A DNA stretch of 64,000 bases from Carpediemonas membranifera BICM (GCA_019828565.1 JAHDYR010000012.1:1607780-1671779), one strand, 5' to 3'. Shown: positions 4,144 to 54,340, numbered from the stretch's first letter. Numbers and translations are program-made. The notes: generated by a model not told the origin, from the letters alone.

Positions 4144-4160
4144 AGGGAGTGATTAATCAC

Positions 4161-4201
4161 TGTGGCGTAAACGACGGGTATTCGAGAATTCGTTTTAATC
4201 A
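4161..4201 (-). repeat. Micro-LTR of element A (~41 bp)
   Basis: tgtggcg...ttaatca between gag A and the interrupted gag of B. Palindrome agtgattaatcact at 4148-4161. Partner LTR is outside the window, so the outer boundary is inferred. Confidence 0.7.
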
Positions 4202-5319
4202 GGTGATGCGTCAACGGCGAGGGTATGGCTTTCGAGAGGTGGTATCTCCGCCTTGGCTGGTGTCGGCGGATCGGTTGTTGGGCGGTCGTGCGGTGACGGT
4301 CTTGCTGTAGGCTCGCCACGGCACGATGATGTTGTTATCGTGGTCGACGTCAAGGGCCTCTAAGGCGCTGATGACGCTGTCCACGTCGTCTTTGATCTCG
4401 ATGAGGGACTTATAGAGCTCCTTTGCATCTTCTTCGAAGTTCTCGAGCGCGATGGAGCGGATCTTCGCGATGACGGCTGTAGGTGGCAGCTCAGCATAGT
4501 TGTCGGCCTCTACATCGGGACTAGCTTGCTGGATTGACTCCTTAAGGGCTGTGATGGCGAGGCGGTGGCCGCCGGATGTGCCGTAGAGACGTTTGTCCTT
4601 CGGGAGTGCAAGTGCTTTCAGGCGAGAACCGAAGTCGGTTTTCGGCATGACGGCAAGGTAGAGATCAGGTAGGATGTCCTTCATCTCTTGGATTAGCTCG
4701 TTGCGAATATCGTCTTCATCTTCGTCGTCGGTTGGGGGAGCGTCGGGGTCGGCGAACTTGGCGGGGATGTCAGGGGGAGCGAACGTCGCACGGGTCGTCG
4801 GCGAAGATGTTTTTCAGAGGCTTGTAGGCGGGATACTGCTGGTCAAGGTGAGCTATAGCGGCGTCAAATTCGGCCTGGGCGCGGCGCTGGGCAGCCGTCG
4901 CCATTGGCCCGTCGGGGAATTTTGCCGCGGCGTGCTGGCATAGGTTAAAAAGATCGTCCTCTAGGAGGAGCTTGATCTCGATGGTGGCGGAGGAGGAGTC
5001 GATGGGCTTAGTACGTTCGAGGCGGAGGCGCGCGCGGATATCGGCCTCGGAGTAACAATCCTCTTCTAGCTCTTGGAAGGTAGTGTATTGCTTAGTCTTG
5101 CGCCAGTTAACGCGGATGAATTCGCGACTAGCTGGTGACAGGGCCCGAAGGAATCCAACGGGAATTTTCTTGTGGTGAACTTCGGCGGCGAACGTCTTCG
5201 CGGCCTTGGTGAGCTCTTTTGCGTTCGAGACATGTAGTCCTTCGGTAATTGACATTGCGCAGTGAATTCACTGTGGCAACTACTAAAGAACAGACAAGTG
5301 TTTATCAATTGATTACTCA
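4202..5319 (-). mobile_element. Gypsy element B, 5' part (LTR 5272-5319 and gag), inserted in pol of C
   Basis: 48 bp LTR similar to the LTR of F (gtgtttatcaattgattactc). Palindrome cagtgaattcactg at 5260-5273. Gag ORFs 4770-5255 and 4211-4684 homologous to gag of A and F. Confidence 0.88.
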
Positions 5320-6848
5320 TCGATTTTGATTGGTTCGAGCAAACTACCGTTCTTCGGCATCTGGGGGTCAAATACGTCTTCATACGCTGCACACAGCGCC
5401 CTGAGGTCTTCGGAGATCTCTGATTCCGGAATATGTATCGTTGAGACTCCTTCTTCCACTTCCTCCGTCGTGTTCGCTTCAAGATAGTCGTTCGCGAACG
5501 GGAAGTCATCTGTTTCATCTTTCTCCTCGGGTTTGAAAACGATATGGAGCCCTTCAGGTGTTAGGAGCCCCAGACTTCTCAGCGTGCTGCAGCCGAGGAG
5601 TATCTTCTCACGAGAGCTTGGCAGGACCAAGAACGTCTGCTCAAACCTCACCTCCCTCTCTCCGACGTGGGGTAAGGTCACCTCCACGGTCAGTGACGTC
5701 GTCACCTTCACCAGCGCGTTACTCGCTGTTCTTATAAACCTCGGTGGGCAACTCTTTTCCACGAGGCCTGGCTGTCTCTCCCGAAGGATATGGGAGGTTC
5801 GTGACGTGATAATCGAGGGCCCTGCACCAGAGTCAATGAGCGCCATGTACTTGGAGGAGTTTATAACCGCCTCCGTGGCCAGGGCTTCCTCGTTCTCATC
5901 GACCGCGTTCGCCTCCATAGGCGTCCCCTTGGGCGGGTTCTGGCGCAGACCGCCGTTCTCCCTCGTGCGGCGCTTAGGGCAGGAGTCGGCAAAATGACCA
6001 ACTTCTCCACAGATGTAGCAAACCTTGGGGGTCCTTGCCTTGCCGGCGGACGAGGTACTGCCGCTGGAGTTTTGGCCGAAGCTCTGGCCGGAGCTCGGCG
6101 TGCTCTTGTTGCCATCCTTCTCAACAGGCTTCTCTGGGACGTCAGGCGCTGAGGATAGCGCCTCGTCATGCTTCGCCATGGCCCGGATGACCTTGACGGT
6201 GTCGGAGAAGGACGCCTTTGGTAGCGTCGTGAGCATCGTCTCCACCTTCCGCTTGAAAGCGGGCGGGCGTAGCTTGGCGACGAGGATCTGGCGCGCCTTC
6301 TTTTGGAGAAAGGTCTTGGCGCGGGCTTCAGCGATCTCGTCTCTCGAGGCATCTCGTTCGCGTTCTTGGATCTCAGCCTTCGACTCACCGTCGTCTTGCT
6401 TGACGATTACGGCTACATCCTCCTTCACCTTATTGAACAGGAAGGCGAAGTCGGGCAGGTTCTCGTACTTTGCGACTTGCGGTGCCAGGTCAGTCCACTG
6501 CGTGATGTCGCTGATGTACTCTCTGATGGCCGCGGTACGGCCCTTCTGGGTCGTGCTTATACCGCACGTAACCCCTTCTATTTTGGCGCGAAACTCCAGG
6601 AGTGAATCAGGGATCACCTCCCTCTGGAGTGTGGTGATGATCTCCTCGAGTGTGATCTTCTCGATGTCATCGGCTCCCAGGGCCTCTTTGACAAGATCTT
6701 GTAGGTCCTGCGCGAGCAAGAGCGCGACAGGAAACCCTTCGTTGCTAGCAAGGAAGATCTTTGCATCTTGTCGCCATTCCTTGATTGCCGCCGGTGATAA
6801 TGCGGAGCTCGTCAGCTTGTTGACTACCTGATTGACCTTCACGTTCAT
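5313..6848 (-). CDS. Element C gag-protease (truncated by insertion of B)
   Basis: CCHC knuckle CYICGEVGHFADSC; aspartic protease ALIDSGA ... ILLG. Confidence 0.88.
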   Translation of the reverse strand: MNVKVNQVVNKLTSSALSPAAIKEWRQDAKIFLASNEGFPVALLLAQDLQDLVKEALGADDIEKITLEEIITTLQREVIPDSLLEFRAKIEGVTCGISTTQKGRTAAIREYISDITQWTDLAPQVAKYENLPDFAFLFNKVKEDVAVIVKQDDGESKAEIQERERDASRDEIAEARAKTFLQKKARQILVAKLRPPAFKRKVETMLTTLPKASFSDTVKVIRAMAKHDEALSSAPDVPEKPVEKDGNKSTPSSGQSFGQNSSGSTSSAGKARTPKVCYICGEVGHFADSCPKRRTRENGGLRQNPPKGTPMEANAVDENEEALATEAVINSSKYMALIDSGAGPSIITSRTSHILRERQPGLVEKSCPPRFIRTASNALVKVTTSLTVEVTLPHVGEREVRFEQTFLVLPSSREKILLGCSTLRSLGLLTPEGLHIVFKPEEKDETDDFPFANDYLEANTTEEVEEGVSTIHIPESEISEDLRALCAAYEDVFDPQMPKNGSLLEPIKIDE

Positions 6849-6916
6849 GGTCTAGAGTGATCACTGTGCTAGGACCTTGTGCTTATACTGCGAAAACTGA
6901 ACTAATCAATATCACA
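5320..6916 (-). mobile_element. Gypsy element C, 5' part (LTR ~6865-6916, gag-protease), inserted in D
   Basis: ~52 bp TG..CA segment; palindrome agtgatcact at 6856-6865; gag-PR ORF interrupted by B just before RT. Confidence 0.85.
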
Positions 6917-8032
6917 ACACCACTCCTCGTCGTCATCTATCTCTATCTCAGTGTCATCTGTCTCTATTGTGGGCAGTCGCAGGTACCCCAGCTCGGCCAT
7001 GGTGGGGAAACCTATTACCATCGGGCGGGGCAGCTGAGGGAGCACGTGGAACTCGAGCACCGCTTGCACCATGCTCAGAGCACCGGGGACCGTGACCTCC
7101 AGCTGAGTCCGTCCGAGAGTCCTTACGACCGTGCGGTCACCGAGGCGTACGTCAACACGCACGCCCGGGTCCACCTTGAGGGCGAGGCGATCGGCCTTCT
7201 CCTCGGTGATGAAGTTGGCGGTCGCCCCCGAGTCCAGCAGAGCGGCGACCTTGTACTCGTGCACTTGCACGGTGATCACCGGGCTCCTGCCGGGGGCTGA
7301 CTCCGCGCTGACCTCTCCAATTTCACAATACTGGGCCGATTTACGGCACTCGCCAGTCGTGTGACCGAACATACCGCAGTTAGTGCAGTGTTTGATCGGT
7401 TCCCTGCATGCGTTCATCTTGTGTGGGCCGCCGCAGTTGAAGCACTTGGCCTCAGCGGGGTCGCGCTGTTGCTTCTCACGCTTCTCAGCGGCGGACGGCT
7501 GCGCCTTGCGGCGCCCTTGCTGTTGACCTTGCAGCTGGCCATGCTGCTGTCCGGAGGGACGTGGCTTCTTGTCGAGCTCGACCAGCTTGTACCCGAGGTC
7601 CGGCAGGCGATCCTTGAGGCGTTCTAGGTCGTTAAGGAGCGTGCGACTAATGGAACAGGCGAGGCTCATGACCTCTTCTAACGGAGTGTCATCACGAGTG
7701 CGGTCCTTCAGCTCATACCGCGTGGACGTGGCGGGAATGCCACTGATGAAAAGCTCTCGTAGGTTCAGGGACTTGGCCGCGTCGCCCATGATGGAGCGGA
7801 CGCGTTCGAACTCAGCGACGTACAGGGCTACATCGGCCGGGCGGATGGAGGAGGCCTTGAGACCCTTGAATGCGTTGCGGATAGTTGTCTCGTCGTTGGG
7901 GCGCAGCGCACCAAGGAGTGCTTCGACGAACATCTTGTCTCGGGCCTTCTTGAGCTTGCGGCGGCGTTTCTTCGAAAGTTCGTCCCCGTGTTCGTCCTCA
8001 GATGGTATTGTAGGGTTCTCGTCGGTTAAACA
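6917..8032 (-). mobile_element. Gypsy element D internal fragment (gag-protease)
   Basis: ORF 6902-7933 with two CCHC knuckles (CFNCGGPHKMNAC, CTNCGMFGHTTGEC) and ALLDSGAT. Cut by the LTR of C on the left and the 3' LTR of E on the right. Confidence 0.85.
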
Positions 8033-9384: not shown

Positions 9385-9421
9385 TGTGGTATGGATAGAA
9401 CAGCTAGCGAAAGAGATTTAA

Positions 9422-11014
9422 TCAATTGATTGGGACACTACCCCTCTCCTCGAGGTGACGGCGCACGACGGACGTGCGGGCGGCGTCAGAGTTGGGACCC
9501 TCCCACGTGGCCTTAGCCTCAGGGAAGCCGAGCCACTTAATGAGGAGGTCGCCAGTCTCGTCGTCGACCTCTAGGACTTTCTCGACGTAATACTCCTCGT
9601 CGTCGGTAGCCGCGATGCGCAACAGTTCGGCGTCGCTGAGGGGGCCTTGGCAGATGCGGATTAACTGGCTCAGGTGGACCCGGCGGCTCTTGCCGCCAGT
9701 GAGCGGCGTGATCTCCGCTGCGTAACCGTCGGCGGCTGTGATGCGGAATGGGCCGCGGTGGCCGTGTAGCTTCGTGGGGCTCTCGTTCTTACGAAGGACC
9801 AGAGTGCCCGGCTCGATCGGGGGCGTCGGCTCTGCGGTCCTTGTCATTGCCTGCTGGCGGTTGAGGGCCTGGTCGGCGAGGATCTGGAGGTGCTCGGTGA
9901 GCGCGTCGATGTAGGAGGCTATGTCGTCCAGGGGAGTATGAACTCTACCCTCCTCCTTGGGTGCGATCGTGAAGTCGCGAGCGGAGGCATGCTTGCCCAT
10001 CAAGAGAGCAATGGGTTCGACGCCGGTGACGGAGTGGACCGTAGTGTTCAGGATGTACTGGACGTATGGGACCACGGAGGCCCAGGCGTCGTAACGGTCA
10101 AACATCAGACAGAGCACACGTAAGTGTCGCTTGACTTCCTGGTTGCGTCTCTCGGCCAGGCCGTTTGACTGAGGGTGGAAAGGGATTGTCCGGTGGTACG
10201 TGACCTGCAAGCGATCAAGGAAAGCTTCTATCATCCGATTGCGGTACTCGGGGCCGTTGTCCGAAAGGAACTCGCGAGGCACACCGTAGCGTCCGATGAT
10301 GGACCAAAGTGCCAGCCCGACCGTCGTCGCGTTGTTGGAAGCTGTGGGGATGAGCTCCGTGAAGCGGGTAAACATGTCGGTTGCCACCACGATGTATCTG
10401 AAACCCTCGGAGTCGACAGGGAAAGGACCCATGGTGTCTACAGCGATGGTCTGGAAGGGTCGGTCGCGCAGAGAAGACTGCGTTGTGGTCTTAATGAAAG
10501 CGGAGAGGCGTGCCTTAGCGCAGTACACGCAGGTTGACACGACTGCGTGCACGTCGGAGTGGAGGCCTGGCCAATCGTGCCCAAGCTGGCGGACGTTCCT
10601 GATGGTGGCCTGCTCGCCCTCGTGGTATCGGTGAGCTTCTTGCACGATCTTGCGCTTGGCGTCTTCGTCGAGCTCGGCCTCTGAGACGTTGTTGACCTGC
10701 GTGACTGTGGCCTGCGGGTTGTATCGACTGAGTGCGTCGGCCAGTGTGTTCTGCGCGCCTGCGATGTGTCTGATGACGAACTCGAACTCTTGGATCATAA
10801 GCAGCCAGCGGAGGTGCTTACGGTTTTCCTGGCCAGCCTTGGAGTGCAGGTAGACCAAGTTGCGGTGGTCCGTCCAGATCGTCAGGTCCTGGTGGACTCT
10901 AAAGATGGGCGAGAGGTCAGGCCGAGTGAGGCAGTAGATGATCGCGAACAGCTCCTGGTCGTACGTGCACCAACGCGACTGTGTGTCGTTGAAGACCTTT
11001 GAGAAGAATGACAC
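9422..11014 (-). CDS. Element J RNase H-integrase-chromodomain
   Basis: TDHRNL, ADALSR, HHCC, VDTMG/SDNG/AERRN, chromodomain YYVEKVL..IKWLGFP; stop codon lies inside the 3' LTR. Confidence 0.92.
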   Translation of the reverse strand: MSFFSKVFNDTQSRWCTYDQELFAIIYCLTRPDLSPIFRVHQDLTIWTDHRNLVYLHSKAGQENRKHLRWLLMIQEFEFVIRHIAGAQNTLADALSRYNPQATVTQVNNVSEAELDEDAKRKIVQEAHRYHEGEQATIRNVRQLGHDWPGLHSDVHAVVSTCVYCAKARLSAFIKTTTQSSLRDRPFQTIAVDTMGPFPVDSEGFRYIVVATDMFTRFTELIPTASNNATTVGLALWSIIGRYGVPREFLSDNGPEYRNRMIEAFLDRLQVTYHRTIPFHPQSNGLAERRNQEVKRHLRVLCLMFDRYDAWASVVPYVQYILNTTVHSVTGVEPIALLMGKHASARDFTIAPKEEGRVHTPLDDIASYIDALTEHLQILADQALNRQQAMTRTAEPTPPIEPGTLVLRKNESPTKLHGHRGPFRITAADGYAAEITPLTGGKSRRVHLSQLIRICQGPLSDAELLRIAATDDEEYYVEKVLEVDDETGDLLIKWLGFPEAKATWEGPNSDAARTSVVRRHLEERGSVPIN

Positions 11015-13152
11015 GACGCGCCATGTGTTGTCCGAGTCAAGCTGCAGTAAGACACCGCCGATGCCTTCGAGAGAGGCGTCGGTCTCGAGGCGCCAGGGCC
11101 TGCTCTGGTCCGGATGGGCGAGACCTCTTCGTCTGTCACGGCCTGCTTGAGCTGATCAAACAGAGCCTGAAGCGTGTCGTCCCAGTCGTTGAAGGTGTAG
11201 GGTGGGACCTTGCTGACCAAGGCCTGGAGCGGCTTGAGGCGTGTCTGGCAGTTGGGGATATAGTCACTGAGGTATGTGAACATACCGATGATCATGCGTA
11301 GGTCCTTGACCGAGTGAGGTGCGGCGAGGTCCTGCATGGATCTGACACGAGTAGGGCTCATGCGGCGGCCCTTGCCATCGACGATATCGCCGAGGATCTC
11401 GATAGACGTCGCCCCGAAGACACACTTGTCGCCGCGGAGGCGGACGTTGCGTTCCTCTGCGATACAGAGTAGGCGGTCGACGTGGTCTAGAAGCTCCTGA
11501 GGTGTCTTGGCTCGACCAAAGATGTCGTCGATGTAGTTCTTCGTACCGTCCTCGTCGGACATGAGGCCTAAGAACCACAATATATCCGAGCCGATGAGGA
11601 CCTTATCGGCCCTGCCGCTGATGACGTGCAGGGGCCAATCGATGATCGTTCGGCGGTCGCCCAAGCGGTCCGCGACCAGCGTTGTCTCGAAGGTGCCGTG
11701 TTGCTGGAGACCTTGGTCGTCAGGGCCCGTCAGCTGGACCATGTCGGGGCCCCTCCTGCCAAACTGGGCGAGTGCGTTGGCGAGGTCCAGCGAGATGGTG
11801 GACACTACGGAGCCAGGGTCGACCGTCGCTGAGATAAGCGTGTCACCTATCGTCACTGGAATCCGGAGAAGCCGGCCCGGCGAGTAAGCGTGCTCGGCAT
11901 GCTCTACGTTCTGAACGCTGCCTTGTTGGGGCTTGTTGGGGGGTGTCGGTGTGAATGGTGTGGCCTGCTTGGGGTTCTGCCTGAACTGCCAAGGACCCTT
12001 CGACGTCGATGGTTGCTGGGGCTGCTGTGGTTGTCCAGCGGCCTGTCGTTGGGGACCAACTGCCTGCGGCTGGCGTGACTGGTTCTGCTGGGCGGCTGAG
12101 GCTTGGTGTGGTGTGCGTTGAGAGGCCTGGCCCTGGCGGGGATCTTGAGGTTGGCGGCCCGCCGGTGTGGCTCTGTTAGCCTGACTCTGGCGCTTCAGCA
12201 GCCGGCACTCTTCAGTAGAGTGGCCGCCGGGACCGTGGACGCGGCAGGTCTTGCGGCCGTTGCCCGGTGTAGCGGGGACCTTGGCGCCTGCCATGGGACC
12301 GGAGGTCCTCTGGCAGAAGGACCAAGGCGTGACGATCGTCCCATCGGAGTTAGTTGGCAAAGCCAGGATGCGGTGCTGGACGTCATCGATGGTGGTGGCG
12401 CCGTCGGCGAAATCCTCGAAGGCGAGGGCGGCTTCGGTGACGTCAAAACCGCGGGTCAGCACGCGGAAAAGCGTGGATATCAGCCTCTTCTCGGTGAGGG
12501 GCGTGTAACCGTTTTCTTCTGTCGGGAACTTGGGGTTCAGCTGGCGACAGTGCTTGCCGAAAGCTAGGAACATCTTCTGCATAGAGGTGATGTCTCCACC
12601 TGTGAGCGTGGTCCTTTCCAGGATCGCCGCCGCGCGAGCGGCTGGGTTGGCCCGCTGGGCGGGTGTCAGCTCGAAGTACGCGGTGTAGGTGAGCAAGAGG
12701 TCCGCCCGCTCGCGGAGCTCCTCCCTCGAGAGGCGCTCTGAGGCGTTGGTCGAGGTGTCTGGGGCCGTCGGTGGCGGACTGACCGCCTTGAGGGCTGCGG
12801 TGATGAAGGCCTGCTTCAGCTCGTCTGAAGCGATCGAGGCCGCTTGGGTGTCTATATCCTTGAGCTTGGCCAGGAGAGCGCTGAGCTCCTCGGCCGATTT
12901 GTCGTCGTCGTTCTTCTCGGGTTCATTCTGCTCGGAAGGCTTATGAATGGGAGGACGGATCTCTGTCTCAAAGAAGCATTGGAAATCCTCGAATGTTGGG
13001 AATCTCGTTGTCGGGATGAACGCCGCGCGGATTTCGGCTAGTTTCTCGCTCCCGAGGAAAAAGAGGATGCTAGACGGCTGCTTTTTGCTTGCATCGTGAA
13101 GACGATACTCGTCTAAACGGCTGTTGCTGACTAAAACCATGACAGTGATCAC
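10882..13152 (-). CDS. Element J gag-protease-partial RT
   Basis: CHHC knuckle CRVHGPGGHSTEEC; protease VDPGS; jumps directly from the protease end to NYIDD, so the RT N-half is missing. Likely ATG at 13140. Confidence 0.88.
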   Translation of the reverse strand: MITVMVLVSNSRLDEYRLHDASKKQPSSILFFLGSEKLAEIRAAFIPTTRFPTFEDFQCFFETEIRPPIHKPSEQNEPEKNDDDKSAEELSALLAKLKDIDTQAASIASDELKQAFITAALKAVSPPPTAPDTSTNASERLSREELRERADLLLTYTAYFELTPAQRANPAARAAAILERTTLTGGDITSMQKMFLAFGKHCRQLNPKFPTEENGYTPLTEKRLISTLFRVLTRGFDVTEAALAFEDFADGATTIDDVQHRILALPTNSDGTIVTPWSFCQRTSGPMAGAKVPATPGNGRKTCRVHGPGGHSTEECRLLKRQSQANRATPAGRQPQDPRQGQASQRTPHQASAAQQNQSRQPQAVGPQRQAAGQPQQPQQPSTSKGPWQFRQNPKQATPFTPTPPNKPQQGSVQNVEHAEHAYSPGRLLRIPVTIGDTLISATVDPGSVVSTISLDLANALAQFGRRGPDMVQLTGPDDQGLQQHGTFETTLVADRLGDRRTIIDWPLHVISGRADKVLIGSDILWFLGLMSDEDGTKNYIDDIFGRAKTPQELLDHVDRLLCIAEERNVRLRGDKCVFGATSIEILGDIVDGKGRRMSPTRVRSMQDLAAPHSVKDLRMIIGMFTYLSDYIPNCQTRLKPLQALVSKVPPYTFNDWDDTLQALFDQLKQAVTDEEVSPIRTRAGPGASRPTPLSKASAVSYCSLTRTTHGASCHSSQRSSTTHSRVGARTTRSCSRSSTASLGLTSRPSLESTRT

Positions 13153-13205
13153 TGTGGTATGGATAGAACAGCTAGCGAAAGAGATTTAATCAATTGATTG
13201 GGACA

Positions 13206-14815
13206 TATGGACCTGGTCAAAGGCAATCTTCATGATCGATTGGACTTGGGTCTTGGCGAAGAGACAGCGTGACAGTGCGTCGGTGACTACGTTGTCCTTG
13301 CCAGGTATGTGCTCAATTCGGTACGAGTACTCCTGCATACGCAGGGCCCATCGCATGACCTTCAGGGTCAGCGACTTCCGCATGAAGACGAGGTTTCGGT
13401 GGTCAGTCTGGATCAAAAACGGGTGACCCAGGAGGTGGTGGGAAAACGTCTGGACTACGGCGAAGAAAACGCCGAAAGCTTCCTTCTCGATTGTTGCCCA
13501 TTTCCGCTCGGGTTGGGTAAATGTGTGAGAGCAGTACTCGACCACGCGTTCCTTTCCATCAATCAGGTTAAGGAGCATTCCACCGCACCCGATATCAGAC
13601 GCATCGGTGCGAACTATGATGGGGTAACGGTAGTCAAGGTGGGCGAGTGTACCAGCAGACGCGATCAGGGCTTTCGTTGCCTCGAAGGCGTCCTGGTGAG
13701 CACTGGTCCATTTCCAGGCGTGTTTTCCTGAGGTCAACTCGTACAGAGGCGCAACAGTAGTTGCTAGTCGGGGGACAAAGCGTCTAAAATAGTTGACCGC
13801 TCCCAGGAAGGCACGCGTCGTGGTGATATCGGACGGCGGGGCCATATCCAGGATCGCTTTAGTCCCTCTCGTCGGACATTCTGACACCCTGGCCAGAGGC
13901 AATATGGCCCAAATAGTCGATCTCCGTGGCATACAACTTGCACTTTACTGGGTGGAGGACGAAACGGTAGTCAGCCAGTCGGGCGAGGACCTTATCGAGG
14001 TTCGCGGCTAACTCCTCCACAGTGGAACCGTGGACGGCAATATCATCGATGAAAACTTCGCACACAGTCCCAACCAGGCCTGAAAGGACCTGTCGCATGG
14101 TCGCCTGGAAGAAGGCAGGGGCTGTCTTGATGCCAAAGGGGACCCGTGTGAACTGGAATAGGCCTTCCGCCGTGGCAAAAGCCGTCATAGGGCGGGACTC
14201 AGGATCCAGGGGTATTTGGTGGTACCCAGACACAAGGTCGAGAGTGGCAAAGCAAGTCTTGCCTCTCAGGCGAGCCAGGATCTCATCGGGGGTTGGGGAT
14301 AGGATGGGCATGGTCCTTGACCGTCTCGTTCAAGAGGCGATAGTCGATCACCATTCTGCGGAGACCACCCTTCTTCGCAACCGTAAAGGCTGGGGCGCTC
14401 CAGGGACTTGTAGAGGGCTCGATAATGCCCTTCTCGAGGAGTGAAGCTACCTCAGCATCGATTTGTTCGCGAACCGCAGGGCTCTGGCGACGAGGCGGAA
14501 CAGACACCGGGACAGCGTCTGGTAGCAGTTCGATCACCATGGGCGGTACGTCGGCGCCCTCGGGGTGTACCTGGGCCGTAAAGAGTAAACAGTACTTTGC
14601 TTTAACCTGCGCGATCACTTCAGGCACGTCTTCGACACGAGCAGCACGGGGAGGTGGTGACGACGGACGCGGTTCGTGAGCGTCCGGAACGATGAAAAGA
14701 TCTTCGTCATCGCCCCAATCGTCAAGGCGGCTCGTTGAAACGTCCTCATCATCGTCGATGTTATCCGTAGCGCTGAAAGCGAGGTGGTGGAGCAGATCTA
14801 GCTCCTTCATCGTGT
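13206..14815 (-). mobile_element. Gypsy element E RT-RNase H part
   Basis: IDYRLLN, LDLVSGYHQ, VPFGI, FIDD, RTDAS, TDHRNL, DALSR; continues into the integrase at 9384 across the J insertion. Confidence 0.9.
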
Positions 14816-15390
14816 TGTACGAGATAACTGGCCCTTCACGGCGAACTCCCGCAAGTATGCTTCACGAATAGTGTCGTCCTCGACCAGGTCAAGGCACTCG
14901 AACAAGGTGTTGAACTGCGAGTTCAGTCTCGAAACCTCGAGTGACGTGAATGCCGCGATGCGGAGCCTGATAAGGTTCAGACATTACTCCTTCCTGGTGG
15001 GACGCAAGGCAGCAGCAAGCCGCTGCATAATGGTCCTCTCTTTGACCTTGCGTGATGTTGTGGAAGATTGGTCGTCCTGTTGATCACCCTGAGGAAGCGG
15101 GACATCCTCGAGGGCCTCTAAGCCTAACACCTGGCATACGTAGGATTGTATCTCCGGGCTGATAAGTTTCCGGAGCTTCGCTTTGCCACCTCTGGCCTTG
15201 AAATCGCGCAATGATGTAGTAAACGTCACGAAAGCGCTGAAAGTAGCTTCCTTGAGTAGCGGTGCTTGGTTCTTCCCGTCTCTATCCATCGGGAAAGTAC
15301 TAGTACTGTAGTCTTGGAAGAGATAGGTTTACAAGTAAAACGAGGTTAGGACCCTCCTGGGGTTATTGGTAGATAGTAATATTGACTACA
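14816..15390 (-). mobile_element. Gypsy element G 5' end (84 bp LTR 15307-15390 and degenerate gag)
   Basis: LTR tgtagtc...gactaca with 7 bp terminal inverted repeat; palindrome agtactagtact at 15296-15307; gag ATG at 15289 with premature stop. Confidence 0.8.
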
Positions 15391-16666
15391 CTGTGAAGAA
15401 AAAAGCACCAGAACTCGGCAACGAAGCCTCGTTGAGGCCTCTAATGGCCATATTTCGACAGTACTATGTAATGAACGCGAAGAAGTCCCCATGTTGGGCA
15501 AAATACGAAACCGAAGGTCGTTTTGTAGTACCAACTGCTTTAATCAAATCAATCCCATAAATCACTCAAATCTGGTGGCCGCTGCTCTCGCGTCAGCCCC
15601 CACAGCTGCCTCCTCCTCCTGAGCAGCGGCTTCGGCTGCCAAGAACTCATCGAGTGCGGCCAGACCGCTAACGACGTAGTACGGCTCCCATGTCGGCGCC
15701 TGTCCGACCCAGTCGACCTTGAACTCCGCTTCTCCCAGGTCAGTGATCCGGCGGTCCACCACGGCCCTGACCTACTGCTCACCCAGGTCGAGCCCGGCCA
15801 GCCTGACCAGCTCTTCTTGCGAGATACCCGATCCGTCGAAAGGGATGACTCGCTCAAAGTGCACTTCGATCTTCACTTCCGTATTCTCCACTGATGCAGC
15901 CTTGATACCGAAATTTAGGACCTCGGTGACTCGATAGGGGCCTTTGAGCCGCGGTTGAAGCTTCGGCGGCCGATGCGGGGGCTTCACCAGGATGAGGTCT
16001 CCGATCTTCGGCCGCTTCGCCTCTGGCAAGCCCTCGGCTGCTCTCGTGCCCATAGCACGCTTCTGCCACTCGATGGTCTTCTCTCTCGCTGCCGTCAACG
16101 CTCCCAGCTGCCGTTCTTCTTCCCTCTCCTCCTGAGCGTTGATCGGGAGTAGCCAGTTACGCTTGGGGAGCTCGGCCTTCGATAAGGACCATGGGCTAGT
16201 CCCAATAGACCGATGGAACGTGGTGTTGATCGCCAGTTGGACCAGCGGCAGAGAATCCGGCCAGTCCTCGAACGTACCCCAGTTGCCCATGAGAGACCTC
16301 AGCTTCGTCGTCCACGTGCGGTTGAGTCTCTCACACATACCATTCCCCTGAGGGTGGTAGGCGAACGTCAGCTTCGGCCTGACTCCAAACGCCTCCAGCC
16401 ACGCGACGGTCTCTTCACCGGTGAACTCGCCCCCCTCTGTCGGAGCGGATCTCCTCAGGGATGCCCCATTCACCAAACCAGCTGCACAAGGCCGTGGCTG
16501 CTGCCTTCGCTGACTTATCCTTGGCGGGAACCAGCATCGTCCAGCGCGTAAACTGGTCTATGATCGCGAACACGTACTTGGTGCCGTCGGCCGCGGTCGG
16601 GGTGACCTTGACCGTGTCGATAGCCACGAACTGACCCTGCCGCGTGGCTTCAGTGGCGCCTCCTTG
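15391..16666 (-). mobile_element. Duplicated copy of element H integrase-chromodomain and 3' region
   Basis: Same as 20186-21460 with one extra C near 16435. Confidence 0.85.
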
Positions 16667-18657
16667 TGTGGAGTAATCAATTGATAAACACCTTTTTGCT
16701 TTAAGCCAACGCCACAGTGAATTCACTGCAATGCGAGGCGAAAACATGCTTGTCAGTGTAACAAACGCACATGAGCTCTCCGAGGCCATCAAGTCTTACA
16801 AGAGAGAACTGCCTCATGTGAAGCGCCCTACTTCACTTATTCGCACCTTTGATCCCGCCACGACGGAGTTCCTTCACGCTAATTGGAGGAAGACGAAGGA
16901 ATACGCCTCCTACGAGGCTATGGAAGAGACACGATATCGGACGCTGAGGTCCGCCGCGCTCTGCGTGAAGAGCATAAGCCAGAAGATCGGGTCAGTTCCA
17001 AGGCCGTCATGGCCCAGATCAAGGCACTCCTAGAGGAAGATCTGTTCAACGTTGCCTCCTCTGCCGCCCTGAAGCACCCCGATGGCCCCTTGGCTGCGGC
17101 CGCCCAGCGCCGCGCCACGTCCCTATTTGGCGCAGCAGTCTCCGCTATAGACCCAGAAAACCCGAAGTACACGCCGTTGCTGAACGTCTTCGAGGAAGGC
17201 AACCCGGCAGCCACAGTCCGCGACGGTCAAGAGCTCGCTACGGCTGCCGAGGAGGAGTCAGGCCACGACGCCCCCGACATACGACAGCAGCTTGCGGACG
17301 AGGCCGACGCGATCGCCCCCCATCTTTTCATGACTCTGCTTCCGTCACTCGATGCCGGCGCCCGCCTCATCTCCCTCAATATTTCGAACGAGCTTTATGG
17401 AAAGGCCGCAACACACCGAGTGGCCATCCAACGCCTTCGAGAGGCCGTCGATGAAATCAATCCCGCCATCGAGGCCCCGAACTACGAACAGCTCCACGAA
17501 GCCGCGCTGATCGCGAAGATCAGGGAACTAGCGCTCATTGGCTACACGAAGGAGGCTAAGGCCATCTATAAGGCCGAGATAGAAGCCGATGGCACCGTCG
17601 ACAGCGTTCTAGACGCTCTCGCAGAACTCGACGAAGACCACGACGGAATGATCATCACGCCCTGGCGCGCATTCGCCGCGAAAAAGGTCCAACCGCCAGC
17701 CAAGAGCCAGCCCAACAGCGCCACGACAGCAGGCAGAAAGCCGCAGGCAAGGAAGGTCAGCGGCGATGACCCATATGTCCAGTTCAAGGATAAGTCGAAG
17801 TACTTCATCCCCCGAAGCCTGAGGAAGTACTGCGACTACCACGGCTACAACACGTCACACACCTCGGCCCAGTGCAAGGCCTTGAGCCACAGCTCAGACC
17901 GCCCTTCCGTCCAGCAACGTCTTACCCCTCAGCAAGGCCAACAGCGCCCGGCTCAACAGCAAGGCCAACGACAACAGCCGCGCCAGAGCGGCCAGACAAG
18001 GCCCAATCCGCCGCCACAGCCCTCGGGCCATACCCATCAGTCCCGCCAAGCTGACCCCCAGAACTCAGGCCCCAGGAAGGCCTGGAAGCGCAACGCTCAC
18101 ACTAACCGCCTCGAGAGCGACGTCAACGAGCTCTACGAGTCATCCGACTCCGACTCCGATATCGACGAAGTCGAAGGACGAGCTCGAGTCCGAGCTGGAG
18201 AAGTACAGAGACACCGTCTTCCTTCCCAAGCTTGCACCAGGCGGCGCCAAGCTGCCACATGCCACGATCGACCTCGTTCCCGGGGCCTACCTACCACAGG
18301 CTGCCGCGCGGCCTATTCGCCCTGCTTGGAGAGATGAGGTCAACCAACAACTCGCCGACTTGGAGGCACAGGGCATCATCAGAGACGCCCACGGACACGT
18401 CGCCAGCCCAGTGGTCATCGTCGACCGCCGCTCAGATGCAACCACGCGCAAGCCGCTGAGACTCTGCTGCGACTACAGAGACATCAACAAGAACACGATC
18501 CCCGACGCATTCCCCATGACGGACATCAAGCACCTCGTCCAAGATCTTGTCGGGTCGAGCTACTTCTTCACCATGGACTTACGACAGGGCTTCCATCAGA
18601 TGCCCGTTAGACCCGATGATGTCTACCTCACCGCGTTCCGTGTGCCAGGCGCGTTCA
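16667..18657 (+). mobile_element. Duplicated, 3'-truncated copy of element F (LTR 16667-16716, gag, RT start)
   Basis: Same as 21461-23451 except a 1 bp deletion near 16927. Confidence 0.9.
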
Positions 18658-19605
18658 GTCCCTCTCGTCGGACATTCTGACACCCTGGCCAGAGGCAATA
18701 TGGCCCAAATAGTCGATCTCCGTGGCATACAACTTGCACTTTACTGGGTGGAGGACGAAACGGTAGTCAGCCAGTCGGGCGAGGACCTTATCGAGGTTCG
18801 CGGCTAACTCCTCCACAGTGGAACCGTGGACGGCAATATCATCGATGAAAACTTCGCACACAGTCCCAACCAGGCCTGAAAGGACCTGTCGCATGGTCGC
18901 CTGGAAGAAGGCAGGGGCTGTCTTGATGCCAAAGGGGACCCGTGTGAACTGGAATAGGCCTTCCGCCGTGGCAAAAGCCGTCATAGGGCGGGACTCAGGA
19001 TCCAGGGGTATTTGGTGGTACCCAGACACAAGGTCGAGAGTGGCAAAGCAAGTCTTGCCTCTCAGGCGAGCCAGGATCTCATCGGGGTTGGGGATAGGAT
19101 GGGCATGGTCCTTGACCGTCTCGTTCAAGAGGCGATAGTCGATCACCATTCTGCGGAGACCACCCTTCTTCGCAACCGTAAAGGCTGGGGCGCTCCAGGG
19201 ACTTGTAGAGGGCTCGATAATGCCCTTCTCGAGGAGTGAAGCTACCTCAGCATCGATTTGTTCGCGAACCGCAGGGCTCTGGCGACGAGGCGGAACAGAC
19301 ACCGGGACAGCGTCTGGTAGCAGTTCGATCACCATGGGCGGTACGTCGGCGCCCTCGGGGTGTACCTGGGCCGTAAAGAGTAAACAGTACTTTGCTTTAA
19401 CCTGCGCGATCACTTCAGGCACGTCTTCGACACGAGCAGCACGGGGAGGTGGTGACGACGGACGCGGTTCGTGAGCGTCCGGAACGATGAAAAGATCTTC
19501 GTCATCGCCCCAATCGTCAAGGCGGCTCGTTGAAACGTCCTCATCATCGTCGATGTTATCCGTAGCGCTGAAAGCGAGGTGGTGGAGCAGATCTAGCTCC
19601 TTCAT
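18655..19605 (-). CDS. Element E reverse transcriptase, duplicated copy (intact frame)
   Basis: 316 aa with IDYRLLN, LDLVSGYHQ, FIDD. Confidence 0.88.
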   Translation of the reverse strand: MKELDLLHHLAFSATDNIDDDEDVSTSRLDDWGDDEDLFIVPDAHEPRPSSPPPRAARVEDVPEVIAQVKAKYCLLFTAQVHPEGADVPPMVIELLPDAVPVSVPPRRQSPAVREQIDAEVASLLEKGIIEPSTSPWSAPAFTVAKKGGLRRMVIDYRLLNETVKDHAHPIPNPDEILARLRGKTCFATLDLVSGYHQIPLDPESRPMTAFATAEGLFQFTRVPFGIKTAPAFFQATMRQVLSGLVGTVCEVFIDDIAVHGSTVEELAANLDKVLARLADYRFVLHPVKCKLYATEIDYLGHIASGQGVRMSDERD

Positions 19606-19610
19606 CGTGT

Positions 19611-20185
19611 TGTACGAGATAACTGGCCCTTCACGGCGAACTCCCGCAAGTATGCTTCACGAATAGTGTCGTCCTCGACCAGGTCAAGGCACTCGAACAA
19701 GGTGTTGAACTGCGAGTTCAGTCTCGAAACCTCGAGTGACGTGAATGCCGCGATGCGGAGCCTGATAAGGTTCAGACATTACTCCTTCCTGGTGGGACGC
19801 AAGGCAGCAGCAAGCCGCTGCATAATGGTCCTCTCTTTGACCTTGCGTGATGTTGTGGAAGATTGGTCGTCCTGTTGATCACCCTGAGGAAGCGGGACAT
19901 CCTCGAGGGCCTCTAAGCCTAACACCTGGCATACGTAGGATTGTATCTCCGGGCTGATAAGTTTCCGGAGCTTCGCTTTGCCACCTCTGGCCTTGAAATC
20001 GCGCAATGATGTAGTAAACGTCACGAAAGCGCTGAAAGTAGCTTCCTTGAGTAGCGGTGCTTGGTTCTTCCCGTCTCTATCCATCGGGAAAGTACTAGTA
20101 CTGTAGTCTTGGAAGAGATAGGTTTACAAGTAAAACGAGGTTAGGACCCTCCTGGGGTTATTGGTAGATAGTAATATTGACTACA
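19611..20185 (-). mobile_element. Element G 5' end, second copy (LTR 20102-20185)
   Basis: Duplicate of 14816-15390. Confidence 0.8.
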
Positions 20186-21460: not shown

Positions 21461-21524
21461 TGTGGAGTAATCAATTGATAAACACCTTTTTGCTTTAAGC
21501 CAACGCCACAGTGAATTCACTGCA

Positions 21525-23132: not shown

Positions 23133-23154
23133 GGTCAACCAACAACTCGCCGAC

Positions 23155-34688: not shown

Positions 34689-34883
34689 ATCTTCGTTCTC
34701 TTTTTTTTTCTCGCAACTCCCGATCCGAAGAACAGGCGCATCGCTGATCAGATCCGAACAATACTGCAGTAGCATGCATAAATAGTGTAGCAATGAAGGT
34801 ATACCTCTTTACTTGGATCAAAAGCTTGTCCTTTGCTTCAAATCAAAATGTGCCATTCATGAAAAAAAATTGGCACATTGCAA

Positions 34884-35888: not shown

Positions 35889-35931
35889 TAAACAGATATA
35901 TATACAATTTATGATCATCTCTCACTAAACA

Positions 35932-37155: not shown

Positions 37156-37618
37156 GAGAATTTCTATCCAAGCTGTTTACGTTGTTACATTTGTCTATTT
37201 ACGTAGACTCCTGGCATTGACAATACCTAAAACTGCGACATTTGTCGGTCATGATTCGAGCAACTAGCCACCAAAAGGTAGAAACGGTAACGTCAGGGCT
37301 CGTGGAAGTTGCCAAAGTACAAGATTCTTACCAAATAATCCGAAAAACTGCTCAGGGCTTGCGAAAGGAAGAAGAAATCAACAAAAAGGTGAATGACACA
37401 GAGTTTCTGCTGCAAGAGATACGCGATTTGTTTATAGATGCCATACAGACGATGAGGGACAAGTAAAAATGACATTCACTAGCTTTGCTTCTCATTTCAC
37501 ATATTCTTGTGAAATATGTGAAATGTGAAACAGATTCTAGTGAATCTCATTTTTTCTTGCACTTTTTGGAGTATCTCCAGGGTATCTCCCGGGAGACTCT
37601 AGCCATTCTTACAGTATG

Positions 37619-38490: not shown

Positions 38491-38509
38491 CACCTTGACT
38501 ATTGAGGAC

Positions 38510-38742
38510 TGGGTCACAAAGCCGTCAGACTGGAAGCTGATACACGATCTCCGCCCCGTCAACTTCTACCAGCAGGTCCGCCAGTTCCGGCTGAAAGGAC
38601 TGACGGAGGTGGCGGCGGGTCTGGCCCATGGCGCTTGGATGACGTCGGTCGACCTCACGTCCGGCAGAGGACGCCAAGCAGTATCTGGGGATCGAGCACG
38701 AGGGGAAGACGTACCGGTGGCGAGCTCTGCCCTTCGGCCTCA
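38510..38742 (+). pseudogene. DIRS/Ngaro-type reverse transcriptase fragment
   Basis: WKLIHDLRPVN..FRL..WMTSVDLTS, then after a deletion KQYLGIEHEGKTYRWRALPFGL. Confidence 0.7.
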
Positions 38743-39011: not shown

Positions 39012-40170
39012 AGGAGTCGCCTGCTCTGTCGCACCCAGACGAGGGTCGAGTTGGGTCGACCGCGCATCGAGGCGGGCGGAGGGCGCCGGACCGCGCGCTA
39101 CCGGAATACGTGGAGTGAGTATCGCTCTGCTGATTCCAGGAGCGCGCTGCCCGTTCGCGTCCGACTCATCGTTTTGGGGGTCGAGTCACATCTCGGCCCC
39201 AAATGAACTGCCCACACGTATGCTGCAAGGGAACAGTCAGAGCAAATCGATGCGCGGAGGGGAGGGACCAGGTGTGCGCGAGGGCAGACCGGGAGGCCGG
39301 CCCTTTGGCACACAGCAAAATCGGTCTGGTCGGCCAGACCCATGTCATCCCAAACTCCATCAGTCAACATGGTGCGTGAATGCATGCTTTAGAGCCCAGC
39401 CCGATGCTATATCGGCCATCAATTTGGTTGACGAACTGTTCACCTGCCTTTCGAAATCCTCTCGAGACTGCGGGTCCGAAGCTGAGCGATGCCGTCACCT
39501 CGACTACAACCATCGAATCGCTGCCGCTCTGCCATAATGCTTGTATAGCCCTCTTACATCTGTATCCGGGCTGTTACCAGCAGGGGCACACTGGAAGTAT
39601 GCGTTTGGAGTCGGCCCGATCTTCGATCTCGACGGACATCGAACATGACGAGTAGAGGTCGGAGAGGGCTGAAACTCACATCATTACACTGTAGGAGAAG
39701 CTCATACAGGATGGCTGACCCATCTTAGTCTTTAAACTCCCAACCTTAGGTTCTGGAGTGGTCGAAAATGACGACTCAGTTTGACTCGATCCACCCTCAG
39801 CCCGCACCCAATGGCATAGCACCATCAACTAGGCCTGGATATAGTGCGAGTGCCCCACTAACAGCATTGGACGCAACGTCTGCCGTCCTCGAGATGGTTG
39901 TGCAGAATACGCCATCTTTTTTCACACATCCCTTCGCGACCTCGAATAATCGCTCTCCAAGCACCTCTGCTGCTATATTTGTGCACGATGCTCATTTAAT
40001 ACGTCTAGATCACGATTCCTCACTCTCTTTCAGTTTCGGTCACTTCTTCGTGCCGAACTAAACAACATCAATCAGGTGCGCCGACGGGACCCTGGAGCGG
40101 CAACAAGGTAAGTCCGCCACCATCTAATGCTGTCAAAATCCTAGCTGTGCGCCACGGCGTCTTCGGACCC
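39012..40170 (+). repeat. Dispersed ~1.16 kb repeat, copy 1
   Basis: Near-identical to 62843-64000. Confidence 0.93.
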
Positions 40171-50610: not shown

Positions 50611-50637
50611 AGTTCAAGTTCAAGTTGTTTACCTCTA

Positions 50638-51080
50638 CTATCGCGGCCTTCTGAGTCTGCTGAGCACTTCTGTGATCCACTGGTGTGGGGGGCCGATGTC
50701 GTTGCTGAAGCCCCTGGGCGGTCCGTCCGTGCCTGCTCTGACGAACGTCAATGCTGGGAGGCCTGTGAACTCCTCCATCTGGTGCTTGGCACCGGCGAGG
50801 TGGGCTGCTGGGAAGTCTTGTGCGAAGAAGCCCACTGAGTATGTGGCTAGGTCGCCCGCCAGTGGCACCGACACTACTACTGCTCCCTCTGTCAGGACCA
50901 CGTCTTGCTGGGTGACGCCAGTCCCGGTGTCCGTTGCCTCGAAGTCTACGATTGCGAGCAGGGGCGTCTTGCTTTGCTTCTGCTTGACTGCCGTTTTTCT
51001 GGAGCGCGTACGTGTGCTTGAGTGCGGGTAGGGTCTGCTCAGACGAGTTCGTGAGGGGGACGTGATCAGGCCGGTGCGCT
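50638..51080 (-). pseudogene. Possible DEDD exonuclease fragment interrupted by element I
   Basis: Frame is open from the LTR edge and contains LLAIVDFEATD..LTEGAVV (ExoI-like); ExoII and ExoIII not seen. Confidence 0.35.
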
Positions 51081-54000
51081 TGTGCCGTGCCTTTGGGGCG
51101 TGCTAGCAAAACCTGTGTGTGTGCCGGGAATAGTGAGACGTGCTTGCTGAAGCCGTCTACTGCTGCAATGATATATTTTGACCCGTCAGCCGACTCAGGA
51201 AGTGGGCCGAGTGTGTCAATAAAGACGACCTCGAACGGGTTGGCGGGCTGAGTGCTGTGGTATGGGACGTCCGTGTCGGCGCTGCGCCTCAGCTGACAGG
51301 TGGGGCACGCCTGGATGAACTTCTTGACGTCTGACTGCATCCCCGACCAGTTGTGTCCACCGGCGCGGATGGCCTGTACGGTCCGCCGGATGCCATGGTG
51401 ACCGACAGCGTCGTTGTGCGCACCTTGCAGGATGTGCTGGTGGCTGTCGTCGAGCGCGGAGACCTCTGCGTCGGTCTGAGGAAGGGCGTGGGAGAGAGTG
51501 TCCGCAACGACGTTCGACGCGCCCTCAATGTGGACGATCGTGGGGTTGTAGTCGCTCAGGATCATCTTCCATCGCGCGATCTTCGCGTTCGAGGCTGACT
51601 TTCGGAACAGGTAAGTGAGGTTCCTGTGGTCCGTGAAGACCTTCCAGTCTTGTTTCAACCATAGGATAGCGGAGAAGTCCGGACGCGTGAGTGTATATAG
51701 GATCGCATAGAGTTCCTTCTCGTACGTCGTCCAGCGTGTTTGCGGGCCCGTCAGCTTTTTGCTAACGAACGTGAGGATCTGACGAGTCTCGCCCTTGAGT
51801 TGGAAAATGACGCCGCCAATCCCGTAATCACTCGCATCGGTATAAACCTCCCAGGAGAGCGACGGGTCGGGATGTGTGAGTTCGATGTGCTTGGTAATGG
51901 CGGCTTTCAGGGCCTGCAGTGCGGCGTCTTGCTCGTCAGTCCACGTGAGGCGGGTGTGTTTCGCACCGGTCATGAGTCGGGTGAGGGGCTCCATCAGCGT
52001 TGCGCTAAAGGGGATGAATGACCGCAGGTAGTTGAATTTTCCCACGATTCGGCGTAGCTCCGTGACGGTCTGGGGGACCGTGAGCTCCTTGAGGGCGGCG
52101 ATCCTGTCCGGGTCGATGCGGATGCCGTCAGCGGAGAGGATGAAGCCCACGACCTTGACGGATCGGCTGCCGATCGTGCACTTCTCGGCGCTGAGGCGTA
52201 GGTTCGCGTCCTTGAGGAGTTGTAGTGTCTTTTGGAGACAAGCGAGGAATTCAGCCTTTGTGCGGCCATATAGCAGTATGTCGTCGATGTAAACCGCCGC
52301 GCCTCGGTGGAGTACGGGTGCGAGGACTTTCTGCATAGCTCGCTGAAAGGCCGCGGGGGCTGTTTTGATTCCGAAGGGTACGCGGCAGAATTCCACGTAG
52401 TCGTCCGGGGTGACAGTTGCTGTGAGTGCGATATCATCAGGGTGGACTCGCATCTGGTGATAACCTGAGCGCAGGTCTAACGAGGCGAAATACTGAGCGC
52501 CGGCCGCCTCCCTGGCAAACAGTCGTAAGTCGGGGAGGGGGAAATGATCATCCTGGATGTACGCATTGATTCGGGTGTTGTCAACGCACACGCGGATCTT
52601 CCCAGACTTGTGGCCGTGCTTAACGATCACGATGGGGGCAGATAAAGGGCCTTCGGAGTCTCGAACGATACCTTGCGAGCGCCAGCGCTGGATTTCAGCA
52701 TGTACTTGCTCTCTGAGAGCTGGATCAGCGATAGGGCGTGGCTTCGCCTGTATGAGGACGTCATCCGTGAGCCTGATGTGGAGAGGATCGAGCTTGGAAC
52801 CTTCTGGGGGCAGCTCAGGCTCGAATACTTGTGAATGCTCTCGGAGAAGGGGCAGAAGAATGTCCTCCTTGAGCTCCGGGACTGTTACTGCTTCATATCC
52901 TCGGGGTGCAACGTTGTCGACGGCTATATCGTCATCGTCGTCGGCTGAAACAGCGGTATCGGATGGGAACGACAGGCTCAGGGAATCTTCGGTGAGGATC
53001 CCTAGTCTGCGAGTACGTCCGTTCCTAATAGGAACTTTGGCACATCTCCCGGAATAATGAGGGCCAGTATCGAGATCTCAGTGTCGTAGCCCGCGGGCCT
53101 GGGCAGGGCAACGGTAACTCGGAGGTATCTGTCGCTAGTGAATGAGTCGCCGGTTGCGACAGCTGCGGAGGTCTTTCTGCCTGTGACGACTCCGCAGCTC
53201 GTGCGTTGGTATAAATGCTCTGCAAAACCACTCGAAACGCATGTGACTCCCGCCCCCGTATCAATAACAATCGGATACTCCAGGCCATTTATATGGCCGT
53301 TCAGGGTGAGCGGGCCCTGCTGGGGGGTGTGCGCGTCGACTGTGTCTACACGCTCCTTACGGGGAGGATTGGGGCGCAGACGGCCGTTGTCACGCGTGAA
53401 CTTGGGTTTGAAGGCAGGCTTCTCGGCAGTCGGACACTCGGAATTCCAGTGGTTGCCACCGCACTTCTCACAGGGAGCAGGAGGGGCGCGGTTGCCCGGA
53501 TTGACGTCGTTTGCTCGGGCCGGGGGTGCGGTGTTCTTCTTGACAGCAGGCTTCTTAGGCTTGGAAGGGGCCTCATCGTCGTTGTCCGCGTCCTTCTTCT
53601 GCTTGATGGGAACGAGCTCGTAGCCCTTGATCAGGGCAGTCTGGGCAAGCTCGTCTTCTTCATCGGCGGCCTCGAGGGCGAGAGTGATGGTGTCTTCGAG
53701 CGAGAGGGTGGTGGCGACCGCTAATTCGGTCTTCAGGCGTACGGCGCGTTGTAGGGGGTACGGGCGCAGGTTGTTGATGAAGATCTTGGCGGCCTTCTTC
53801 TCAGGCTTGTCGACCTTCTCGTCGTCATCGTCATCGGTGTCGTCCTCCTCCGGTTGTTCCTCATCGGGGAAATCTACCTCAGTGCGGGAGGCGTATACGG
53901 CGCGGAATTGCGTGGCAAATAAACGGACGATGCCTCGACGAGTGACTTTGGGCGGAGCGAGCGTGGGCATGGTGCAGCGAGTGTGCTGGAGTTCTCTGAC

Positions 54001-54340
54001 CCACTCGTCGGCGTTGCGGGGCAACAAGAGCGTCGAGGGCTTCGGAGACCTGGTCATCAGAGAGGTCTTGGATTTTTGCGTCAGTCTGTCTCTCAACGGC
54101 GTCAATATACGTCTCATCAAGGAAGACTCGGTAGTTCGCATTGGGGAAGAAGACTTTCAGTCTGTCAACTTCTTGGCGATAGGCTTTCACCCCGGAGCGG
54201 GTGAGCTCGCGGAGCTTAGGGAAATTGCTGGTGCTGATATTGCTGAACATGGTGGTTGTTGTGGACTAGTTTTAAAACTGTGCCGTGCCTTTGGGGCGTG
54301 CTAGCAAAACCTGGTGAGGAAGTATTTAATAGATTGCGAT
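51081..54340 (-). mobile_element. Gypsy element I (gag-PR-RT-RH, integrase truncated)
   Basis: 35 bp direct repeats 51081-51115 and 54279-54313; palindrome agttttaaaact at 54268-54279; gag ATG 54250; CEKCGGNHWNSEC, IDTGA, LDLRSGYHQ, YIDD, YTDAS, HHCC; no TSD found. Confidence 0.9.

Follow-up and report, generated by a model that had tools for sequence, protein, structure and literature searches.

In the Ty3/Gypsy elements (retrotransposons with long terminal repeats, LTRs) of Carpediemonas membranifera BICM, a palindrome at the inner edge of the 5' LTR takes the place of the tRNA primer-binding site (PBS). We analyzed these elements in a 64,000-nt stretch of the genome, hereafter called the window (JAHDYR010000012.1:1607780-1671779; G000:C1:1607780-1671779), and by searches of the whole genome (24.2 Mb, 69 contigs). 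The start of reverse transcription is a defining step for every LTR retroelement and retrovirus, and to our knowledge minus-strand priming has been demonstrated for tRNA primers and for Tf1-type self-priming alone. Here, a whole lineage has a self-complementary site in place of the tRNA site. Minus-strand synthesis is probably primed at this palindrome by the element's own RNA, independently of tRNA. We tentatively favor a model of priming by an RNA dimer, in which the palindrome is the minus-strand priming site and the primer is the same stretch of a second element RNA.

The LTR ends were set independently, either from LTR pairs or from LTR-only copies found genome-wide with the junction as query. 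An initial self-comparison of the window gave no LTR pair of ≥100 bp. When the genome was searched with the junction of element D, copies matched positions 561–801 of the query (LTR plus internal sequence) or positions 561–611 alone, and because one class of copies covers just 561–611, the D LTR is 50 bp. In families A, C, D, E, F, G, and H, the sequence of LTR-only copies broke off at the palindrome's first A or CA. LTR lengths were 50–89 bp in complete elements and ~50–145 bp overall, with element H having the longest. Besides D and E, we recovered 10 further complete elements with LTRs of 57–89 bp; seven lie elsewhere in the genome, on other contigs, and three on environmental contigs. At eight other loci of this genome (L022-24, L030, L033-34, L039, and L041), nesting or truncation of the elements meant that no LTR pair was found, and these loci were excluded from the counts. 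On metagenome contigs, many terminal overlaps reflected assembly rather than true LTR pairs, and the interpretable ends alone were used.

Palindromes are frequent throughout the window, with 89 perfect palindromes of ≥10 nt observed versus ~62 expected from first-order Markov simulations. The class of palindrome alone is therefore weak evidence, and the signal lies in its position. At the junction between the 5' LTR and the internal sequence, a perfect palindrome of 10–14 nt was present in 12 of 12 complete elements from this genome and environmental contigs. The control junctions (3' LTR/flank, flank/5' LTR, and PPT/3' LTR, PPT being the polypurine tract) had none (0/12 each). The background rate of a palindrome of ≥10 nt over such a span is 0.011 per junction, and by hand calculation the chance probability is ~1e-18, counting the nine distinct sequences alone. 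A reading of the window made earlier from sequence only, hereafter the sequence-only reading, had listed nine palindromes, one with a mismatch, overlapping the terminal A or CA of an LTR. All nine are present at the coordinates given, and each begins on this A or CA of a 5' LTR: those at 4148, 5260, 6856, 13142, 15296, 38436, and 54268 lie in minus-strand elements, with the LTR on the right, and those at 16715 and 21509 lie in plus-strand elements. The last two had been listed as separate sites and proved to be one sequence repeated by a tandem duplication; a second F site, at 20091–20102, had not been listed.

Relative to the LTR end, the palindrome starts at −3 to −1 nt in seven of nine families and at 0 or +1 nt in two. 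The ATG of gag follows ~2–25 nt past the palindrome, so close that neither another PBS nor a distinct dimer signal would fit in between. An artifact of insertion site or nesting was ruled out, since the palindrome is internal to the element, between LTR and gag, and is carried at many loci with different target site duplications (TSDs).

The sequence of the palindrome changes while its symmetry is kept. In a tree of the reverse transcriptase (RT) and RNase H domains from 19 elements with known junctions, the junction palindrome was perfectly symmetric in all 19. At least 14 different palindromes, of 10–16 nt, occur across this tree, with repeated changes along it. Sister elements carry different palindromes in the pairs D (GTGAATTCAC) and A (GTGATTAATCAC), L025 (AGTGATCACT) and L046 (AATATCGATATT), and L028 (AGTGATCACT) and L029 (AAGTAATTACTT); elements C and D have theirs in common. 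Elements from environmental contigs (accession prefix PPCM01) are scattered on the tree among families from this genome. The sole imperfect palindrome belongs to element G, a decayed copy that two insertions have broken up; a relative, L044, carries a perfect AGTATTAATACT. Since sisters differ yet all are symmetric, selection acts on self-complementarity rather than on one particular sequence, and the argument of the sequence-only reading that symmetry and register persist by compensatory change holds.

We searched for other sequences with which the site could pair. TGG directly after the LTR, as expected of a tRNA PBS, was absent in every element examined, as the sequence-only reading had noted. 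The longest word shared by the LTR and the complement of the site was 3–5 nt in nine families, no better than for shuffled palindromes; pairing of the Tf1 type was rejected on this ground, and the earlier statement that the geometry differs from that of Tf1 stands. A second arm like CHSeq2 of fungal GalEa elements (described below) was likewise rejected, since matches in the next 100 nt were 4–6 nt long and at chance level in the nine families; the 6-nt downstream match of L027 had a null P of ~0.03, which is not significant over nine tests. No 8-mer of the palindrome occurred elsewhere in its own element, and matches over the remainder of the element did not exceed chance. A comparison with host tRNA 3' ends had been called for in the sequence-only reading, and no 3'-end match was found among the five tRNAs compared (Met, Arg-ACG, Arg-CCG, Asp, and Gln). 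The best matches to these five were 5–8 nt, internal, and inconsistent, the longest being 8 nt between family E and an internal stretch of the tRNA-Arg(CCG) gene. Because the sites differ among families, a single host RNA cannot serve all of them.

The site itself remains as a partner. Predicted homodimer energies were −10 to −22 kcal/mol, and predicted hairpin energies for 11 palindromes were 0 to −4.4 kcal/mol. Seven of the 11, including all those of 10 and 12 nt, formed no stable hairpin, and 5-bp hairpins are possible for the 14-nt palindromes. The sequence-only reading had offered fold-back or dimer self-priming as alternatives; these energies favor the dimer, and fold-back, for which no downstream partner was found either, fares poorly.

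The data establish how the elements are built, the register and persistent symmetry of the palindrome, and the lack of any other partner; we infer a dimer, a cut, a priming event, and an enzyme that would act as follows. The LTR end is set by the start of the minus strand, which requires a primer that anneals on the palindrome. A palindrome is its own complement, and the sole RNA known to have the family's sequence is element RNA, so the primer is probably element RNA. Two genomic RNAs would pair at the palindrome, which would double as the dimer linkage in a very short leader. The RNase H of the Tf1 element cuts an RNA:RNA duplex, making the 3' OH of the primer, and by analogy one or both strands may be cut here at the 3' edge of the duplex. 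The new 3' OH would then lie opposite the LTR-terminal A and be extended through U5-R. Were both strands cut, priming would be reciprocal, and degradation of the copied U5-R by RNase H would trim the primer to the palindrome. A primer of this size would account for the end point of plus-strand strong-stop synthesis. It is conceivable, although we hold it with some doubt, that the palindrome acts as PBS, primer, and dimer linkage at once, with reciprocal priming; this would be a third class of minus-strand priming in LTR retroelements, in addition to tRNA primers and Tf1-type self-priming in cis, reached convergently by a metamonad and environmental Gypsy lineage and by fungal GalEa Copia elements.

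Several points weigh against the dimer-priming model. The families are related, so that the 12 junctions out of 12 are not 12 fully independent trials. The palindromes of L028 and L029 begin 0–1 nt past the LTR, and the register is thus not strictly fixed. In D, E, and L026, the palindrome reaches 2–3 nt into the LTR; full removal of the primer would there lose the CA end, and the model would then require that a few nucleotides of the primer be kept or that the outer base pairs be dispensable. A nuclease that would cut at the edge of an RNA:RNA duplex is assumed, by analogy with Tf1. Finally, the tRNA comparison covered five of at least 63 tRNA genes of the genome.

The palindrome might instead be mainly a signal for dimerization or packaging, with the minus strand begun there by something else, such as a small RNA, a protein, or an end left by a nick. 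We consider this unlikely, although the dimer initiation sites of retroviruses lie close to the PBS and are short palindromes, a comparison also made by the GalEa authors (PMC5445492), and although the predicted homodimers are stable and the leader is very short. A pure dimer signal would have no reason to sit within −3 to +1 nt of the LTR end in every family. Any primer annealing at the U5 edge must itself carry the family-specific palindrome, which points to element RNA. Furthermore, no second candidate PBS was found before gag, and no terminal-protein-like domain was seen in a Pfam scan of the elements.

Fold-back in cis, in which the RNA would be cut past the palindrome or past a complementary arm further downstream and snap back as a hairpin, was the first option named in the sequence-only reading and has been outlined as a proposal for the Conserved Hairpin Site of GalEa elements, which often have a second arm, CHSeq2, 6–41 nt downstream. 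The 5-bp hairpins of the 14-nt palindromes would permit it, whereas palindromes of 10 and 12 nt have hairpin energies of 0 kcal/mol and the best hairpin reaches just −4.4 kcal/mol. With no downstream partner above chance in the nine families (L027 included), this route is improbable.

We give equally little credence to a role as double-stranded DNA, in which the palindrome would be the site of a dimeric protein acting in integrase end-processing, as a host factor, or at a promoter-proximal element. Perfect DNA palindromes are typical of such sites, and the integrase and Gag of each family could co-evolve with its site. However, the centers are wholly different (TGATCA, GAATTC, TTAATTAA-like, ACTAGT, TTTAAA, ATCGAT, GTCGAC, AAGCTT, and GTTAAC), and sister elements with similar proteins have different sites, which fits base pairing better than protein recognition. 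Such a role would also leave the missing primer site unexplained.

A conventional primer, whether the 3' end of a tRNA, a copia/Ty5-type fragment from within a tRNA, or the transcript's 5' end paired as in Tf1, would invoke the sole experimentally established mechanisms for LTR elements and could appeal to the 8-nt match of family E to tRNA-Arg(CCG), but it is very improbable given that no family begins with TGG, that family-specific sites cannot all fit one host RNA, that the best matches to the five tRNAs are short, internal, and inconsistent, and that the LTRs lack a complement of the site above chance.

The elements are genuine Ty3/Gypsy LTR retrotransposons, ~3.8–4.7 kb when complete, with unusually short LTRs. 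In elements A, D, E, and H, Pfam domains of pol began with protease, followed by RT, RNase H, and integrase, which is the Ty3/Gypsy arrangement; integrase comes last, so this order is not that of the GalEa clade of Ty1/Copia. The top solved homolog of D pol was Ty3 Gag-Pol (7q5b, E = 3e-77). Direct, identical LTR pairs with TG...CA ends, TSDs of 4–5 bp, and a PPT were found in D, E, and the 10 further elements. A PBS matching a host tRNA 3' end, which is usual in Ty3/Gypsy elements and not universal in the group, was not found in the comparison with five host tRNAs. In a search for a chromodomain, which marks the chromovirus subgroup of Ty3/Gypsy and lies C-terminally in integrase, no Pfam family was detected at E ≤ 0.01 within the last 100 residues of D pol. 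A multi-family alignment showed a conserved W-E-G...T-W-E-P stretch in this part, which may be chromodomain-like.

Within the window, Ty3/Gypsy elements occupy 1–26.3 kb, 37.6–38.5 kb, and, separately, 51–54.4 kb, and many are nested; fragments of gag and pol were placed by tblastn with element D gag and pol as queries. Element D (21461–25837, plus strand) is complete at 4377 bp and has identical LTRs of 50 bp (21461–21510 and 25788–25837; TGTGG...CCACA), a TSD of CTTG, the PPT GGGAGGGCAG, gag at 21525–23132, and pol at 23155–25797. Its 14-nt palindrome, CAGTGAATTCACTG (21509–21522), overlaps the CA end of the LTR. Element E (9385–13205, minus strand) is also complete, with identical LTRs of 53 bp (9385–9437, 3'; 13153–13205, 5'), a TSD of CCATA, and gag-pol open reading frames (ORFs) at 9422–13152; its 14-nt palindrome, ACAGTGATCACTGT (13142–13155), overlaps the ACA end of the LTR.

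The remaining elements A, B, C, F, G, and H are on the minus strand. Element A has its 14-nt palindrome AGTGATTAATCACT in the PBS position (4148–4161), with LTR-only copies ending on the first A, and a 5' LTR of 53 bp (4161–4213; query 99–151) represented by at least 14 copies of the LTR alone and by at least 13 5' copies; its internal gag-pol extends leftwards up to the window start. Insertion of A interrupts the gag fragment of element C (4214–5237). Element C has the 14-nt palindrome CAGTGAATTCACTG (5260–5273) and a 5' LTR of ~51 bp (5272–5322) defined by LTR-only copies (query 102/105–152/155). In element B, the 10-nt palindrome AGTGATCACT (6856–6865) lies 8 nt upstream of a gag ORF with a zinc knuckle (5313–6848); the presumed 5' LTR of ~56 bp (6865–6920) is supported at its start alone, by one other copy. 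Element F has the 12-nt palindrome AGTACTAGTACT (15296–15307), present a second time by duplication at the unlisted site given above (20091–20102), and a 5' LTR of ~86 bp (15307–15392; duplicate 20102–20187) set by LTR-only copies (query 66–151). Element H has the 12-nt palindrome AGTTTTAAAACT (54268–54279) and a 5' LTR of ~145 bp (54279–54424) set by LTR-only copies; this copy is internally deleted and terminates at a partial 3' LTR (51081–51115). On another contig (C6:749273-753913), three H-type copies of 5' LTR plus leader are spaced exactly 2168 bp apart, a regularity that suggests a short derivative in tandem array, probably non-autonomous.

Element G is an old copy. Its 12-nt near-palindrome AGCATTAATACT (38436–38447, given in element orientation) has one C.A mismatch and adjoins a 5' LTR of ~72 bp (38447–38518; query 80–152), and two insertions interrupt its pol, element D and one of 11.3 kb (26280–37618). 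The 11.3-kb insertion has terminal inverted repeats of 50 bp (26280–26329 and 37569–37618; 49/50 identical), a lower GC content (0.49–0.53), and ORFs of 250–629 aa without a Pfam match, and may be a large DNA transposon of unassigned type. A tandem duplication of 4.8 kb with 99.9% identity (13848–18657 = 18645–23452, with ~12 bp of overlap at the joint) contains second copies of F's junction and of the 5' portion of D, including a D 5' LTR (16667–16716) and palindrome (16715–16728) on the plus strand that do not constitute an independent case. The duplication is either real or an assembly artifact.

The LTRs of D, E, and L025-L035 have in common a T/G-TAAA-C/T motif ~24–37 nt before the LTR end, which we speculatively take to resemble the Giardia poly(A) signal, and the LTRs of D and E also have the palindrome AATCAATTGAT(T) in common. 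Such shared motifs may form a compact initiator or poly(A) signal, and this would account for the ability of an LTR of 50 bp to function in this host. Among ~40 loci fetched around Gypsy copies, six had a tRNA gene ~0.3–1.5 kb from the element end (L025:3737-3810, L027:7051-7124, L031:1581-1653, L032:4518-4591, L036:2671-2744, and L013:622-695), which could reflect integration targeted to tRNA genes or chance. On the environmental PPCM01 contig of L048 (L048:5077-5100), a (CCTTA)n run directly follows a truncated 3' LTR and may be a telomere-like repeat of the contig's source organism. Elsewhere in the window, a 541-aa ORF (59506–61131, plus strand) encodes a thymidylate kinase domain (E = 1.5e-29) fused to a NUDIX hydrolase domain (E = 9.5e-15). 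A direct repeat of 1.16 kb with 98% identity (39013–40170 and 62843–64000) has its copies 23.8 kb apart, the second leaving the window, and an inverted repeat with 82% identity lies at 56362–56958 and 58041–58601.

Among known systems, Ty3 of Saccharomyces resembles these elements in its domain order, TG..CA LTRs, PPT, and short TSDs. Ty3 primes with initiator tRNA-Met at a bipartite PBS, and its LTRs are 340 bp. Standard LTR finders have a default minimum LTR length of ~100 bp; with LTRs of ~50–90 bp, elements such as those described here fall below it and will likely be missed in the annotation of protist genomes. Elements of ~4.4 kb with 50-bp LTRs and rich natural covariation would also offer a small, tractable system in which to ask whether dimerization and priming can be one event. 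The dimer initiation site of HIV-1 is comparable as a short palindrome in the 5' leader, by the PBS, that pairs two genomic RNAs, a pairing predicted here from homodimer energies. The HIV-1 site is 6 nt long, is placed in the loop of a hairpin, and accompanies a tRNA PBS, whereas the palindromes here are 10–16 nt, lie exactly at the PBS position, and have no separate PBS.

Self-priming by element RNA is established for the Tf1/sushi group, where it occurs in cis in the clade of Tf1, Tf2, Maggy, Skippy, and Tcn1 (PMC6317226). These are likewise Ty3/Gypsy elements without a tRNA PBS, primed by their own RNA, as we propose for the C. membranifera elements. In Tf1, the cis partner of the PBS is the transcript's first 11 nt, so that the complement of the PBS lies inside the LTR, whereas here the LTR has no complement and the site is complementary to itself alone.

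The closest precedent is that of the GalEa elements, Ty1/Copia retrotransposons of Pezizomycotina that lack a tRNA PBS and have a Conserved Hairpin Site (Donnart et al. 2017, PMC5445492). Its first part, CHSeq1, is a 9-mer (CTGATCAGT or CTAATTAGT) after the 5' LTR that becomes palindromic once extended by the LTR's final A; in most cases another 9-mer complementary to it, CHSeq2, follows 6–41 nt downstream and forms a hairpin with a conserved A/A mismatch, although it is absent in some families (PMC5445492). The authors excluded Tf1-type pairing, noted a likeness to dimer initiation sites, and gave no mechanism (PMC5445492). The sequence-only reading had left room for an earlier report, and the GalEa palindrome is one; our literature search found no palindromic PBS reported for Carpediemonas or for Gypsy elements, returning just the GalEa paper and a paper on bivalve terminal-repeat retrotransposons in miniature (TRIM) that cites it. 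A PBS-replacing palindrome in the same register was thus already known from fungal Copia elements, which reduces the novelty of a palindromic priming site.

The likeness is close. In both groups the palindrome replaces the PBS and includes the final A of the LTR, here with an offset of −1 to −3 in seven of nine families. The cores of the GalEa sequences A|CTGATCAGT and A|CTAATTAGT are very similar to those of A|GTGATCACT and A|GTAATTACT in our elements, and TGATCA and TAATTA occur as cores in both groups. There are also differences. GalEa elements belong to the Copia superfamily and have fungal hosts, whereas these are Gypsy elements of Carpediemonas; GalEa LTRs are 138–311 bp, compared with 50–145 bp here; GalEa elements have essentially two palindrome variants, compared with at least 14, of 10–16 nt; and GalEa elements usually have a CHSeq2 arm, whereas none was found here above chance. 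What the present elements add is therefore a palindromic site in the Gypsy superfamily, without a second arm, with diverse and longer palindromes, and with tiny LTRs. The occurrence of such a site both in these Gypsy elements and in fungal GalEa suggests that the palindromic solution arose at least twice.

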